Shown piece after piece: positions 3,705-63,768 of a stretch of DNA of 64,000 bases (position 1 is the first letter of the stretch; every line of letters starts with the position of its first letter). The stretch is taken from the IMG/VR virus record IMGVR_UViG_3300038463_000730, positions 310,001 to 374,000 of that record, one strand, 5' to 3'. The notes under the pieces are model-generated. The model had not been told where the DNA came from and ran no database searches. It saw only the letters and a list, made by a program, of their open reading frames with translations. The position numbers and the translations under genes were made by a program.

Positions 3705-4832
3705 TCACGCGATGCGGTCGTTGATCTTGTCGAGCAACTTGCTCCACCCCGGCTCCTCATCGAGCCCGTGGAGGATGAGGCGATCCAAGTTGATCTGGGA
3801 ACGCGCGGCGATCAGCGCGATTTCCGATTCGATGTTCAGAAGGAACTTCGCGATCATTCCGGCGACCTCGGGATACGTTCCCTCCTTGCAGTCGTCGATC
3901 TTGGCAGCGAGACGAGCGCAAGTGATCATGGCGCACACGATCTGCTTCGTGCGTTCCATTTTGTCGAAGTCCTTCACGGGCTGTCCCTTGAAGATCTTCT
4001 CGACCACCGGCAAGAGAACCTGATAGTGATCGTAGTAATGCTGGAACTGCATACCGATCTGCTTACCGATGCAGCCCGAAACTTTCGTCACGAGAACATT
4101 AACCGGCCAGTTCTTGTCTTCGCCAACTCGCAGAAGTTTGCTGGCGTTGTGCCAGCCGCGGGGGCTGGCCGAGGCATAAGCGTCGCCCTCATCCACGTCA
4201 CCGAAGAGATGCTCCGGGTGATCGTTGATGTATGCCGTAACGGACGGGTGAATCTCACGACTACGCCCGGCCCACTCCAACCACTGACGGTGATCGGACT
4301 CGATCAGATACTTCTCGGCGCGGTCTAGCAAGGGAAGGGAGGGACGTGACCCACCCTCCGCAGCCAAGTTCCCCGTCATGATGCATGACTTGAGGTTCTT
4401 CAGCGCACGACCGTTGCAGCTACGAAACTGCGTGATCTCCAGGAGAGGCGCCCAGAGTGACGGATCCGCCTTGTCAACCTCGTCGAGGAGAAGCGTGACC
4501 TTCCGATTGCCATCGATCAGCTTCTTGTAGAAGAAGGGCATGATGAATTCGAGGAACCGACGATCTGCATTCGGGTCACGAGCCGAAAGCATGTCGGGAT
4601 ACCCACCAAGATCGACGCGCTCCAAAACAGAGAGGTTTAGGTAAACCTCTTCCGTGTCCGAAGCCGCAATCGATTGCTTCGCAATGTGCGTCTTACCAAT
4701 CCCTCGACGTCCAAACAGAGCGGCATTGCCCTCTCCCTGAATCGTACAAATGAGATTCTCTTCCAACTCCCGGGGATTCAACTTCTTGAGGTTGAAGTCC
4801 GAGATTGCCGCAGCTGTTTCCTTCTTTGCCAT
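3705..4832 (-). CDS. MoxR-like AAA+ ATPase
   Basis: Walker A GRRGIGKT, Walker B LLLDEVDKA, sensor TGN, PLLDR arginine finger, SPRGW. Confidence 0.85.
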   Translation of the reverse strand: MAKKETAAAISDFNLKKLNPRELEENLICTIQGEGNAALFGRRGIGKTHIAKQSIAASDTEEVYLNLSVLERVDLGGYPDMLSARDPNADRRFLEFIMPFFYKKLIDGNRKVTLLLDEVDKADPSLWAPLLEITQFRSCNGRALKNLKSCIMTGNLAAEGGSRPSLPLLDRAEKYLIESDHRQWLEWAGRSREIHPSVTAYINDHPEHLFGDVDEGDAYASASPRGWHNASKLLRVGEDKNWPVNVLVTKVSGCIGKQIGMQFQHYYDHYQVLLPVVEKIFKGQPVKDFDKMERTKQIVCAMITCARLAAKIDDCKEGTYPEVAGMIAKFLLNIESEIALIAARSQINLDRLILHGLDEEPGWSKLLDKINDRIA

Positions 4833-44796: not shown

Positions 44797-44870
44797 GACG
44801 AGCGGAGGACGTTGTTATCGCGAACTCGACACCGGAAACTGATCTACGTGTATGATACACGTATTAAACC

Positions 44871-44910
44871 AAAAGGAAACCCTGGTCACGCTAGAGCGTG
44901 CCAGGGTTCC
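44871..44910 (-). terminator. intrinsic terminator closing the large ncRNA
   Basis: Minus strand GGAACCCTGG-CACGC-TCTA-GCGTG-ACCAGGGTTTCC-TTTT. Confidence 0.8.
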
Positions 44911-46505
44911 GCGGCTTTCGCCGGAGCTGCGTAGGACCCGAGGTTCGACCCGAAGGTCAGTCCGAAGGGGTATCGCGCTTGCGCTGGCCGAGACATTGTC
45001 TCGAAGATCAGCGCTATGGTTGGAGGCCCGAGGGGTCAGGCCATGACCGTAAGATCCAGAACCCGTAGGTGGGATCGTTGGTCGGGACCGTTAAGTCCGC
45101 CGATTACTTTCGCGCCGTTCGGCAGCGTAGTGCGCACCCGGTGGGTGTGCTAGTAATCGGTTCGTTCCCTAGATTCCGGCGAAGCCGGAGATGTCGGGAA
45201 ACTTTCACCTTAGTCCAGAGCGACCGGGATTGGTTGTCCAATCTCAATTCGATGAGACTAAAGTTGGTGTCGCCTTGGTTTTGGAGAATTCAGCTATGCT
45301 GAGCTTTCCGTTACCTATGTCTACGGTTCAGGCTTATCAGGCGCGGACCGATTCGACATCGAAGATGCGTTCGTTGATGGAAGCCTTTCGGCTCAGAGCA
45401 ACGCTGTCGTCCTTTAGGGGACGGAGCAGACCAACCATTTCAGGCTGAACATCTTCTCTTGTTGCGTCACCATTCGGTCGTGTTGGAGTTACCAATTCAC
45501 CTAGAACCTTCACCATCGGGACTAGTGTGAATATGTTGCTGACACTTTGCAGGCGTCGAGCGGGTAACGAATCGGACTCTCAACCTGTTTGATTGCCGAA
45601 CCTCACGTGCTCATTCGGGCAATGCCCGGGAAGAACTTCGTGACTTTGACTCCGTGCGGACTGGATTGTCTGGCGTGTTGACTAGCGTTCGCGACGAATC
45701 GCGTGGCAGGGTCAAGACCCCAGATGGATTAGTTCCGCTGAACTCTCTGAGAAGTACTAGGTGTCCCGAAGGTCACCCTGACGCTCATTGAGCAGAGTCG
45801 TTAGCGACCTCGGTTAGCACGTAGTGCGCCTTGGTTGCCCGCTACCGTTTCCAGTAGCGCAGTTCAGAGCGAGTCTGAATCCTTCACGATCAATTGTGCA
45901 TTCCTTTTTCTCTATCGTTCGACCTCGTAGATTGCGTTGGAAGCCCGAAGGCGTCCCGTGCATTGAAAAGGTTAGAGGCACAACTTCAGCTGGGACAAGT
46001 TGGTTTGCGCTAGAAGAACTTCCTGTTAGGGTAAGTTCCTACCGAGACCATTTCTGGTAACGATACATCTGTTTTACGTTCAACTCAGATACTTCAGCCG
46101 AAGCTGTATGTCCTGAGAAGGTACGGAATACATTTCTTAGTGCCGAAGCACTTGACTCAAGGTATCCGAGAATTGGCTTTTCGGGCCGCATCTCGTATCC
46201 ATTTGCTCCTTTGTAGGGAGTGGCTATGGACAGCCGTGGCATTCACTTACGCGATTTGCCTTCACCGTGGCCAGAAACGTAGACCAGTTGCTTGCTTGTC
46301 GAGTCCTTGCTTCCTTTCGAAAGCCCAACTTGGAACGGAACACTTGCTGACCGAAGCCAGAATCCTTCTAGCCGTTTCTGCATCCACCCGCAAGGGCTTT
46401 TTGCTTACTCTGCATCGAAGAGCAACAACCTCTCGGCTGCTGCTGTTTCGCTCGGTGTTTCGTCCCTGCTGACAAGGAGGACACTACGCCGGTCCCTCCG
46501 ACCGA
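44872..46505 (-). ncRNA. candidate very large (~1.6 kb) structured non-coding RNA of unknown class
   Basis: No credible ORF in ~1.7 kb; seven C-UUCG-G and at least six GNRA-capped hairpins on the minus strand, with no C-UUCG-G on the plus strand; ends in a terminator. The 5' boundary is approximate. Confidence 0.78.
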
Positions 46506-46573
46506 ACAACAAAAAAGAACACGCCCGATCACTTTTTTCTGCGCTTGAGCTTAAGTCCTTTTCGGAAGCTCGT

Positions 46574-46939
46574 TCAAAGCAAAACTTTAAGCGAAACCTT
46601 CTTCCAATGGGCACAATAAAAGGTTCGGTGCGTTTCCAATGCTCCCCAATCCGAACTGGTCAGACGCATAAGCTGAACTTTCGGCCTGTAGGTCTTATGC
46701 GGGACGAGATCCCCGAAGAACTCATCCTCCTTCTCTGCGACTCGGCAAAAGCCCCACTCCAGGTCCCCACTTCCCATCGGGGCGCTCGGTTTCTGAGGCT
46801 GCCAGAAAGAGGAGCCCTGCGCGGTCAGCACGTAGCCATCCATGACACCGACCCCTCCTATAGAGGGAGGCACCGGGGCGGTAGGCTGATGCCGGTCCCA
46901 ATGGATACAGCCAGCGCAACTTTTAGCATTCGAACTCAT
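46574..46939 (-). CDS. Cys-rich hypothetical protein, paralog 1
   Basis: CAGCIHW...WGFC...THRTFYC; start moved to ATG 46939 (ATGA coupling). Confidence 0.65.
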   Translation of the reverse strand: MSSNAKSCAGCIHWDRHQPTAPVPPSIGGVGVMDGYVLTAQGSSFWQPQKPSAPMGSGDLEWGFCRVAEKEDEFFGDLVPHKTYRPKVQLMRLTSSDWGALETHRTFYCAHWKKVSLKVLL

Positions 46940-63557: not shown

Positions 63558-63599
63558 TTCTCCGTATCTTAATTTCTCGTAAACGTCTTTCCCATTTAG

Positions 63600-63674
63600 A
63601 GCCCACAGCTGGATTCAAACCAACGACTCCGCAGCACGAAGGCCGCGTACTCTGATCAACTGAGTTATGTGGGC
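63600..63674 (-). tRNA. atypical tRNA (Thr-like body; CGT/TCG ambiguous)
   Basis: GCCCACA/TGTGGGC acceptor; anticodon arm CGCGG-CCTTCGTG-CTGCG (8-nt loop); T loop TTTGAAT. Confidence 0.55.
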
Positions 63675-63692
63675 AAAACTGTTACCGTAACT

Positions 63693-63768
63693 TGGAGCCC
63701 AGGGTTGGATTTGAACCAACGACCTTCCGATTAAAACCGGCTGCTCTAACAGACTGAGCTACCCGGGC
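63693..63768 (-). tRNA. tRNA-Lys(TTT)-like with shortened anticodon loop
   Basis: GCCCGGG/CCTGGGC acceptor, encoded CCA; anticodon arm GCCGG-TTTTAA-TCGGA (6-nt loop). Confidence 0.65.

Follow-up and report, generated by a model that had tools for sequence, protein, structure and literature searches.

Genomic location and coding potential

A stretch of about 1.7 kb on a phage genome otherwise packed with genes raises the question of what is encoded where no protein-like open reading frame can be found. The locus lies within a window of 64,000 nt (positions 310,001 to 374,000 of IMG/VR record IMGVR_UViG_3300038463_000730), part of a 435-503 kb viral contig, and is located between complete genes upstream of a gene encoding PNKP, an RNA-repair enzyme that heals 5′-OH and 2′,3′-cyclic phosphate ends. 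The original prediction proposed a free-standing, highly structured RNA gene of about 1.6 kb and no recognised class on the minus strand, based partly on an excess of tetraloop motifs. This core claim is supported: the minus strand encodes one non-coding RNA of about 1,559 nt (Table 1).

All seven predicted plus-strand CCGAAG sites (44950, 44962, 45766, 45945, 46098, 46143 and 46351), corresponding to C-UUCG-G tetraloops on the minus strand, are present, and the region contains no CTTCGG. The chance expectation of 0.4 given originally was too low, as the background of the window is about 0.9-1.1 per 1,634 nt per strand, however seven sites remain improbable (Poisson P = 5e-5 to 1e-4), and CUUCG is the most over-represented 5-mer of the RNA (11 against 2.3 in dinucleotide shuffles). 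Every frame holds 15-28 stops of all three kinds, indicating neither a gene nor a recoded gene, and public gene callers placed only a spurious 59-aa ORF inside the region. ARAGORN identified 17 tRNA genes in the window, all on the same strand and forming a dispersed island around the locus, with the nearest at 41.4 kb and 50.1 kb, but no tRNA or tmRNA element in 44797-46573.

Table 1. Features of the giant RNA locus, in window coordinates.
Feature	Coordinates	Strand	Description	Supporting evidence
Giant non-coding RNA, inferred mature form	44903..46461	-	About 1,559 nt; 5′ end G46461; 3′ end at 44900-44903, or possibly the terminator U-tract at about 44871	5′ ends of 10 independent RNA-only contigs at 46457-46464; contig L071 carries an adapter remnant joined directly to GAAACACC; 3′ ends at 44900-44903; contig L067 joins ...GGAACCCT directly to Illumina adapter
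5′ leader (minimum extent)	46462..46496	-	Transcribed; inferred to be removed from the mature RNA; contains a conserved block, 46462-46490, that occurs once in the window	Contig L070 extends 31 nt upstream of the common 5′ end and carries the same block as the window and the L030 ortholog
Candidate promoter	46548..46577	-	-35 TTGAAC (46577..46572), 18-nt spacer, -10 TAAGCT (46553..46548); overlaps the stop codon of the upstream 89-aa ORF	Conserved in L030 as TTGATT-N18-TAAGCT
Intrinsic terminator	44869..44910	-	Bulged stem 44910..44896 / 44891..44875, loop UCUA, then a U-tract	-28 kcal/mol, z = -5.3, 0 of 200 shuffles as stable; L030 ortholog -32.5 kcal/mol, z = -6.2; compensatory U-A to C-G change between window and L030
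Domain 1	45996..46453	-	Most conserved domain; closed by helices 46453..46444/46342..46333 and 46332..46325/46003..45996; UUCG loops at 46351, 46143 and 46098; GNRA loops at 46426, 46243 and 46048	128 pairs, 27 compensatory; 8-bp closing helix unbroken in all sequences
Invariant block in domain 1	46291..46318	-	28 nt, mostly unpaired, purine-rich (AAGCAAG - GACUCGAC - AAGCAAG); palindrome UCGA at 46302..46299	Identical in all six variants
Domain 2	45892..45985	-	UUCG hairpin (45945); invariant hairpin 45930..45912 whose loop holds GUCGA, complementary to UCGAC of the domain 1 block	Helices 45985..45978/45899..45892 and 45971..45965/45910..45903
Domain 3	45476..45891	-	Long-range helices enclosing a variable insert (about 45840-45610, large indels between variants) and a conserved 3′ sub-domain (45612..45474)	Sub-domain: 38 pairs, 10 compensatory, 94.7% of cells paired; slid partners give 0-1
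Domain 4	45207..45472	-	GAAA hairpin at 45381, which is UUCG in variant L047	Helices 45472..45464/45273..45265, 45456..45450/45367..45361 and 45264..45253/45217..45207
Variable 3′ tail	44903..45206	-	Poorly conserved; lineage-specific hairpins (UUCG at 44950 and 44962, GAAA at 44912)	Only the hairpin at 45127..45111 is shared

Homologs and distribution

Five further sequence variants, from 64 or 65% to 89% identical, were recovered from public assemblies. BLASTN against 50,697 GenBank phages found no match, exact-block scans of IMG/VR returned only the window's own contig and five chance 17-mer hits, and a scan of 185,579 species genomes gave four chance hits only. An exhaustive search of representative proteins with the antisense pseudo-ORF returned two irrelevant repetitive proteins, exact look-ups of pseudo-ORFs from two of the variants (L044 and L045) found nothing, and the upstream 89-aa ORF has no homologs beyond itself. 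Genomic context is known for only two megaphages, both of which place the RNA upstream of PNKP. Twenty-seven IMG/VR loci around PNKP relatives at about 60% identity show no nucleotide or profile similarity to the RNA and carry AAA ATPase, thioredoxin and SPFH genes instead. The RNA is therefore dispensable for the wider phage group, and a functional link to the adjacent PNKP is unproven, since the adjacency is seen in only two genomes and more than 1,000 PNKP relatives lack the RNA.

Conserved secondary structure

Across the six sequences, a fold of four consecutive closed domains followed by a variable tail is conserved. The consensus energy is -552 against -270 +/- 10 for column-shuffled alignments, and of 350 consensus pairs, 92 have double (compensatory) changes against 35 +/- 5 in the shuffled alignments, with 51 clean against 14. 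A five-sequence run and a PNKP coding control agree, and in domain-level tests of domain 1 and the domain 3 sub-domain 0 of 500 shuffles reached the observed values. Only six distinct sequences in two subgroups underlie these counts, which include inherited changes and were not assessed with an R-scape-type statistic. Five of the seven predicted UUCG loops and five of the six predicted GNRA stems cap helices of the consensus structure, whereas the UUCG loops at 44950 and 44962 and the GAAA stem at 44912 lie in the strain-specific 3′ tail. Pairing statistics alone do not decide the strand (90.4% against 85.6% for the mirrored structure), however UUCG and GNRA caps swap at homologous hairpins, which, together with the terminator and contig orientation, fixes it as the minus strand.

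Of particular interest are two invariant loops, the most conserved elements of the RNA, which contain UCGAC (domain 1) and GUCGA (domain 2) and are the best candidates for a tertiary or intermolecular kissing contact. This pairing is an inference: both loops are invariant and so offer no covariation support, and although the UCGA of the domain 1 block is one of only two conserved unpaired palindromes, such palindromes are not enriched. A scan for conserved complementary unpaired 5-mers, as expected of pseudoknots, found none under strict criteria.

Transcript boundaries

Nineteen short contigs from more than 15 samples contain only this RNA (JGI samples 3300019258, 3300019270, 3300016728, 3300016700, 3300019260, 3300016750, 3300052344, 3300050613, 3300051535, 3300037849 and 3300031043; SRA runs SRR6057752, SRR6943126, SRR6943229, SRR6943233, SRR30280387 and SRR35944367), including 18 contigs of one variant from at least 10 samples. 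All are under 2 kb and never reach flanking genes, their ends cluster within a few nucleotides with one sequencing-adapter junction at each end, and 16 of 19 are in sense orientation (P = 0.002). These contigs argue for a minus-strand transcript and are read as a discrete, abundant, 5′-processed molecule in environmental RNA, an inference from contig ends that presupposes RNA libraries, as sample types could not be confirmed. The 3′ end could also reflect random primers failing inside the terminator hairpin rather than processing. The boundaries require a small correction from the predicted 44872-46505, and the suggestion of two tandem RNAs is not supported, because single contigs span the RNA and there is no internal repeat.

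The predicted terminator at 44871-44910 is real, and the transcript, which carries a leader, stops at or just before it. The predicted TTGAAC-N18-TAAGCT promoter exists and is conserved in L030, but it fails the sigma-70 consensus scan, no canonical promoter was found, and it remains a candidate only. A second possible promoter, TTGTTC-N17-TAGTGT at about 46505-46478, is excluded by contig L070, which shows that this block is transcribed. A stem pairing the 5′ leader with the 3′ trailer, of the kind cleaved by RNase III in rRNA precursors, was inspected by eye, however only about 5 bp can form and it is not convincing.

Comparison with known large RNAs

None of the 4,227 Rfam 15 families is hit above noise by the window region (at gathering thresholds or E <= 10) or by four homologs (E <= 5), and the weak hits differ between homologs. 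This includes GOLLD, ROOL, OLE, HEARO, raiA, SSU and LSU rRNA, RNase P, tmRNA, group I and group II introns (with no group II domain V hit) and self-cleaving ribozymes. The element also has its own terminator and lies between complete genes. Literature searches found no description of such an RNA.

GOLLD is likewise a very large, elaborately structured ncRNA of unknown function encoded by phages or prophages near tRNA genes, with one well-conserved and one variable part, and is expressed during infection (PMC12286853), as is only inferred for the present RNA. GOLLD is roughly 800 nt against about 1,560 nt here, and its 3′ region is conserved, whereas in the megaphage RNA of this ~0.5 Mb genome the 5′ three-quarters is conserved and the 3′ tail is variable. 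ROOL (Rumen-Originating, Ornate, Large) is also a phage or prophage RNA found near tRNA islands, and is reported to be as abundant as 16S rRNA yet non-essential; here abundance is implied by the RNA-only contigs and dispensability by absence from close relatives. The present RNA is about 2.7 times longer than ROOL and has a different domain organisation. With 16S rRNA it shares a length of about 1.5 kb, several consecutively closed domains, many UUCG and GNRA tetraloops that interchange between lineages, excision (inferred here) from a longer precursor, and assembly as stand-alone contigs of about 1.5 kb in environmental data, however it lacks universal rRNA motifs, is present in only one narrow phage lineage, and no evidence links it to ribosomes. 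OLE is another large, ornate, well-conserved ncRNA with unknown biochemistry that acts as a ribonucleoprotein scaffold, but it is bacterial (Bacillota), about 600 nt and membrane-associated with dedicated protein partners, and no partner genes were recognised among the neighbours of the present RNA.

Possible roles

The identification of a single, highly structured non-coding RNA belonging to no described family is made with high confidence, and we regard it as a new RNA class among the giant ornate phage RNAs, with which it agrees in being longer than 500 nt, non-coding, supported by covariation and encoded by a phage near tRNA genes. Its function is not addressed by these results. By analogy with GOLLD and ROOL, the likeliest role, proposed only tentatively, is that of a stable structural RNA. 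It would be made in quantity during infection, fold into a rigid multi-domain body, and act as a scaffold, either by self-assembly through loop-loop and A-minor contacts or as the core of a ribonucleoprotein, probably connected with the tRNA and translation functions of the phage.

A less likely alternative is a decoy or sponge RNA that sequesters a host factor during infection, such as an RNA-binding regulator, a ribonuclease, a ribosomal protein or an RNA-sensing defence protein, with the invariant purine-rich block as the binding site. The symmetric AAGCAAG...AAGCAAG arrangement of this block, the implied abundance, the precedent of OLE binding ribosomal protein bS21 and the neighbouring RNA-repair enzyme are consistent with this reading. 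However, GGA motifs typical of CsrA or RsmA sponges are not enriched (27 against 29 expected), there are no repeated binding modules, and a 1.56 kb four-domain fold conserved by covariation is far more than a sponge needs.

It is also possible, though somewhat more doubtful, that the RNA is a large ribozyme or the catalytic core of a ribonucleoprotein, as its size, multi-domain architecture and invariant segments, which lie in loops and junctions rather than in helices, resemble rRNA, RNase P and group II introns more than regulatory RNAs. Tetraloop classes swap as in rRNAs, and the defined 5′ end could come from cleavage, next to an enzyme that heals 5′-OH and 2′,3′-cyclic phosphate ends. No known ribozyme or self-cleaving motif matches even permissively, no chemistry can be inferred, and the 5′ end can equally be made by a host RNase. 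A more far-reaching reading, only slightly less likely than the scaffold role, is that this is the first of a categorically new class of RNA machine, either a 16S-rRNA-sized ribozyme or ribonucleoprotein core or an RNA-only super-structure larger than the GOLLD cage, with a role in taking over host translation or tRNA metabolism or in countering RNA-targeting defence.

It is improbable that the stand-alone contigs are DNA assembly artefacts, produced when a conserved core is split off at strain-variable flanks as happens with 16S genes, although sample, library and assembler types are unknown. Conservation continues upstream of the common 5′ break in the window, L030 and L070, so the break is not at a conserved/variable boundary, adapter assembled onto both termini needs many fragments ending at the same base, and the contigs are biased to the sense orientation. 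Even if this were true, the covariation evidence for a structured RNA would stand. A very diverged member of a known large family (rRNA-like, group II intron, GOLLD, ROOL or OLE) is suggested only by size and by the phage and tRNA-island context, and is already largely refuted by the permissive covariance-model searches. Decayed or recoded protein-coding DNA, or an mRNA for small peptides, suggested by the protein genes upstream of PNKP in RNA-less relatives and by the 59-aa ORF, is refuted, as tblastn of the relatives' proteins finds no remnant in the region, substitutions lack codon periodicity (0.36-0.38, against 0.51-0.66 for PNKP), only 17 of 76 indels are multiples of three, neither the 59-aa ORF nor an SD-like AAGGAG...AUG is conserved as an ORF, and structure conservation far exceeds the PNKP coding control.

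Such RNAs are hidden in public data as "hypothetical protein" calls on stand-alone contigs of about 1.5 kb, and can be retrieved through those spurious ORFs. Apart from rRNAs, the largest structured RNAs known in bacteria and phages are GOLLD (about 800 nt), ROOL and OLE (about 600 nt), whose recent cryo-EM structures showed unexpected RNA-only cages and dimers. With its covariation-supported four-domain fold, its ends that appear defined and processed, and its apparent high abundance in environmental RNA, this RNA is an obvious target for finding out what giant phage RNAs do, and, being unrelated and twice that size, it would be the largest non-ribosomal structured RNA of the prokaryotic and viral world.

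Gene content and sequence features of the region

The 1.78 kb between the stop of a small ORF and the start of PNKP contains 15-28 stop codons of all three kinds in every frame. PNKP is confirmed as a kinase plus 3′-phosphatase. The seven CCGAAG sites (CUUCGG on the minus strand) claimed in the original prediction are present at the positions assigned to them, and the region has no CTTCGG. The true background of the window is about 1 site per 1.6 kb per strand, higher than the 0.4 originally expected, however the excess remains significant (Poisson P of about 5e-5 to 1e-4), and CUUCG is the most over-represented 5-mer of the RNA (11 against 2.3). Sliding-window folding gives z-scores down to -4.7 inside the region and about 0 in the flanking genes. 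The coordinates of the features described here are collected below.

Coordinates of the RNA, its domains and neighboring or related features
Feature	Sequence	Coordinates
Stop of the upstream small ORF	Window	46574
Start of PNKP	Window	44796
Leader segment containing GUGUCCUCCUUGU	Window	46474-46487
5′ ends of ten contigs of four variants	Window-equivalent	46457-46464
5′ end placed by the L071 adapter remnant	Window	G46461
Domain 1	Window	46453-45996
Invariant, largely unpaired purine-rich block	Window	46318-46291
Domain 2	Window	45985-45892
Invariant hairpin	Window	45930-45912
Domain 3	Window	45891-45476
Domain 4	Window	45472-45207
3′ end cluster	Window	44900-44903
U-tract of the terminator	Window	near 44871
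Perfect 8+1+8 palindrome	Window	44846-44862
Spurious hypothetical proteins (59 aa, 45 aa, and 136 aa on the antisense strand)	Window; L061; L069	45337-45516; 992-1129; 464-874
All 17 tRNA genes (minus strand)	Window	29403-50214 and 63599-63768
Two adjacent tRNA-like genes (minus strand)	Window	63599-63674 and 63693-63768
Paralog of the AAA-type ATPase (minus strand)	Window	3708-4793
Split PNKP reading frame	L027 and L028	5001-5935
Extra 122-aa ORF	L034	237-605
Segment unrelated to the window	L066	1-112

Comparison with known RNA families

No Rfam 15 family reaches its gathering score anywhere in the region, and a permissive scan gives only three unrelated noise hits. Four homologs scanned in the same manner give different noise hits. 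BLASTN against GenBank phages finds nothing. ARAGORN identifies 17 tRNA genes in the window but none in the region; these genes, interspersed with small ORFs of unknown function, form a dispersed tRNA island that surrounds the RNA gene. Interestingly, the two adjacent tRNA-like genes score well in Rfam (43.7 and 54.8 bits), but ARAGORN gives them no identity and a two-base "anticodon". Their anticodon loops appear to be 6 or 8 nt long instead of 7, and one loop reads UUUUAA(U), which could be a UUA ochre-suppressor-like anticodon.

Distribution among related megaphages

The source record, IMGVR_UViG_3300038463_000730, is 435 kb in IMG/VR and 503 kb as the JGI contig. Its PNKP has more than 1,000 homologs at about 60% identity, many on contigs of 400-510 kb. 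The 27 such loci retrieved carry protein genes (AAA ATPase, thioredoxin, SPFH) upstream of PNKP, share no similarity with the RNA, and encode proteins that leave no tblastn trace in the corresponding region of the window. Two blocks that are invariant in all RNA variants occur only once in IMG/VR, in this contig. The RNA is therefore single-copy here and absent from the related megaphages held in IMG/VR. One closer relative, L030, has a PNKP that is 89% identical and a homologous ORF-free gap in the same place, between a small ORF and PNKP.

The PNKP neighborhood has been rearranged in this phage, as a paralog (32% identical) of the AAA-type ATPase that sits next to PNKP in the RNA-less relatives lies about 40 kb from PNKP. 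In two related megaphage contigs, L027 and L028, the PNKP reading frame is split into two ORFs (140 aa and 146 aa) with a gap of about 70 nt, which could be a frameshift, a pseudogene or a small insertion. One otherwise identical strain copy of the window's phage (L034, compared with L031 and L033) has an extra 122-aa ORF with a faint HNH hit upstream of the region, which looks like a strain-level gain or loss of a homing-endonuclease-like gene.

Recovery of homologs and absence of coding signal

An invariant 18-mer recovered three homologs, L045, L047 and L044, from the metagenome collection, a subset that did not return several JGI contigs later found by other routes. Public gene catalogues carry spurious "hypothetical proteins" called inside this RNA, and these pseudo-proteins proved an effective handle for retrieving further RNA homologs from the protein and contig collection by exact-protein look-up. 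The 59-aa sense ORF gave contigs L061 and L062, a variant 88.6% identical to the window, and L064-L068, which are identical to the window, while the 136-aa antisense ORF of L047 gave 18 contigs from at least 10 samples. Together there are six distinct variants at 64-89% identity to the window, forming two subgroups. Substitutions are spread evenly over the three phases (maximum fraction 0.36-0.38), whereas PNKP shows 0.51-0.66. Only 17 of 76 indels are multiples of three and no ORF is conserved, indicating that the region is not protein-coding.

Conserved structure

RNAalifold was applied to the six sequences and to column-shuffled alignments put through the same pipeline.

RNAalifold results for the six-sequence alignment and column-shuffled alignments
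Measure	Six sequences	Column-shuffled
Consensus energy	-552	-270 +/- 10
Consensus pairs	350	about 258
Pairs with changes on both sides	92	35 +/- 5
Such pairs with no broken cell	51	14 +/- 4

Although these counts come from only six distinct sequences and without R-scape statistics, a five-sequence analysis agrees, and a PNKP coding alignment put through the same pipeline scores far lower. Sliding the 3′ partners drops pairing from 90% to 30-38% of cells. The fold consists of four consecutive closed domains plus a variable 3′ tail. Domain 1 has 128 pairs, 27 of them compensatory, with an unbroken 8-bp closing helix. Domain 3 holds a variable insert and a 3′ sub-domain of 38 pairs, 10 of them compensatory, with 94.7% of cells paired; none of 500 shuffles reaches the observed values, and slid controls give 0-1.

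Pairing alone barely separates the strands, however the hairpin caps do. They are UUCG or GNRA on the minus strand and swap class at homologous positions, for example CUUCGG in four variants against UGAAAG in L047, and CGAAAG against CUUCGG. The orientation of the terminator agrees, as does that of the RNA-only contigs (16 sense, 3 antisense, P = 0.002).

RNA-only contigs and inferred transcript ends

Nineteen contigs (L044, L045, L047, L061, L062, L064-L068 and L070-L078) contain only RNA sequence, and all 18 contigs of the L047 type are under 2 kb, at 1,209-1,541 nt. The 5′ ends of ten contigs of four variants cluster within a few nucleotides, and L071 carries an adapter remnant joined directly to GAAACACC. 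L070 reaches 31 nt further upstream and carries a block that is also conserved in the window and L030, suggesting that a leader is transcribed and removed. This leader contains GUGUCCUCCUUGU, present in the window, L030 and L070, which resembles the anti-Shine-Dalgarno 3′ end of 16S rRNA (CCUCCU). The first 112 nt of L066 are unrelated to the window, so this contig is probably a chimeric assembly join, and the first 40 nt of L047 are likewise artefactual.

The 3′ ends cluster at GGAACCCU(GGC), and L067 is joined to adapter after ...ACCCT. This position lies in the 5′ arm of a strong, conserved terminator hairpin (-28 kcal/mol, z = -5.3); the true 3′ end may therefore be the U-tract, with the hairpin refractory to priming. 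These contigs suggest a discrete molecule with defined ends, a reading made without read-level data or confirmation that the samples are RNA libraries. The alternative of a break in DNA assembly fits poorly, as conservation continues upstream of the break and adapter sequence can be assembled onto a contig end only if many fragments stop at the same base.

The promoter candidate of the original prediction, TTGAAC-N18-TAAGCT, is conserved in L030 but fails the consensus scan; it is compatible with the leader but remains unproven. Between the terminator and the PNKP start lies a perfect 8+1+8 palindrome (ACGTGTAT-N-ATACACGT) that occurs once in the window (0.12 expected) and is nearly identical in L030. 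It may be an operator or promoter element for PNKP.

Possible functions and novelty

Neighboring proteins other than PNKP and a NUDIX hydrolase have no family match, and the adjacency to PNKP is seen in only two genomes, the only two variants with genomic context. Of particular interest are the two most conserved elements, an invariant, largely unpaired 28-nt purine-rich block and an invariant hairpin. Their loops contain the only two conserved unpaired palindromes, both UCGA, and are complementary over 5 nt (UCGAC and GUCGA), a candidate tertiary or intermolecular kissing contact that is inference only. The context resembles that of GOLLD and ROOL, both phage RNAs near tRNA islands that form RNA-only cages and have unknown function; ROOL is reported to be as abundant as 16S rRNA yet non-essential (PMC12286853). 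On that basis, and without functional measurements, a structural or scaffold role is tentatively considered the likeliest of the possibilities. A decoy or sponge role is considered less likely, and GGA motifs are not enriched, which argues against a CsrB-type sponge. A ribozyme or ribonucleoprotein core is rated slightly lower again.

Rfam 15 has no such family, full-text searches found no description of it, and the large IMG/VR survey of structured RNAs reported only motifs of 29-151 nt (PMC10690425). The RNA is therefore a new class, placed here within the known kind of giant ornate phage RNAs. It is about twice as long as GOLLD, comparable to 16S rRNA, has an unrelated fold, and comes from a megaphage.
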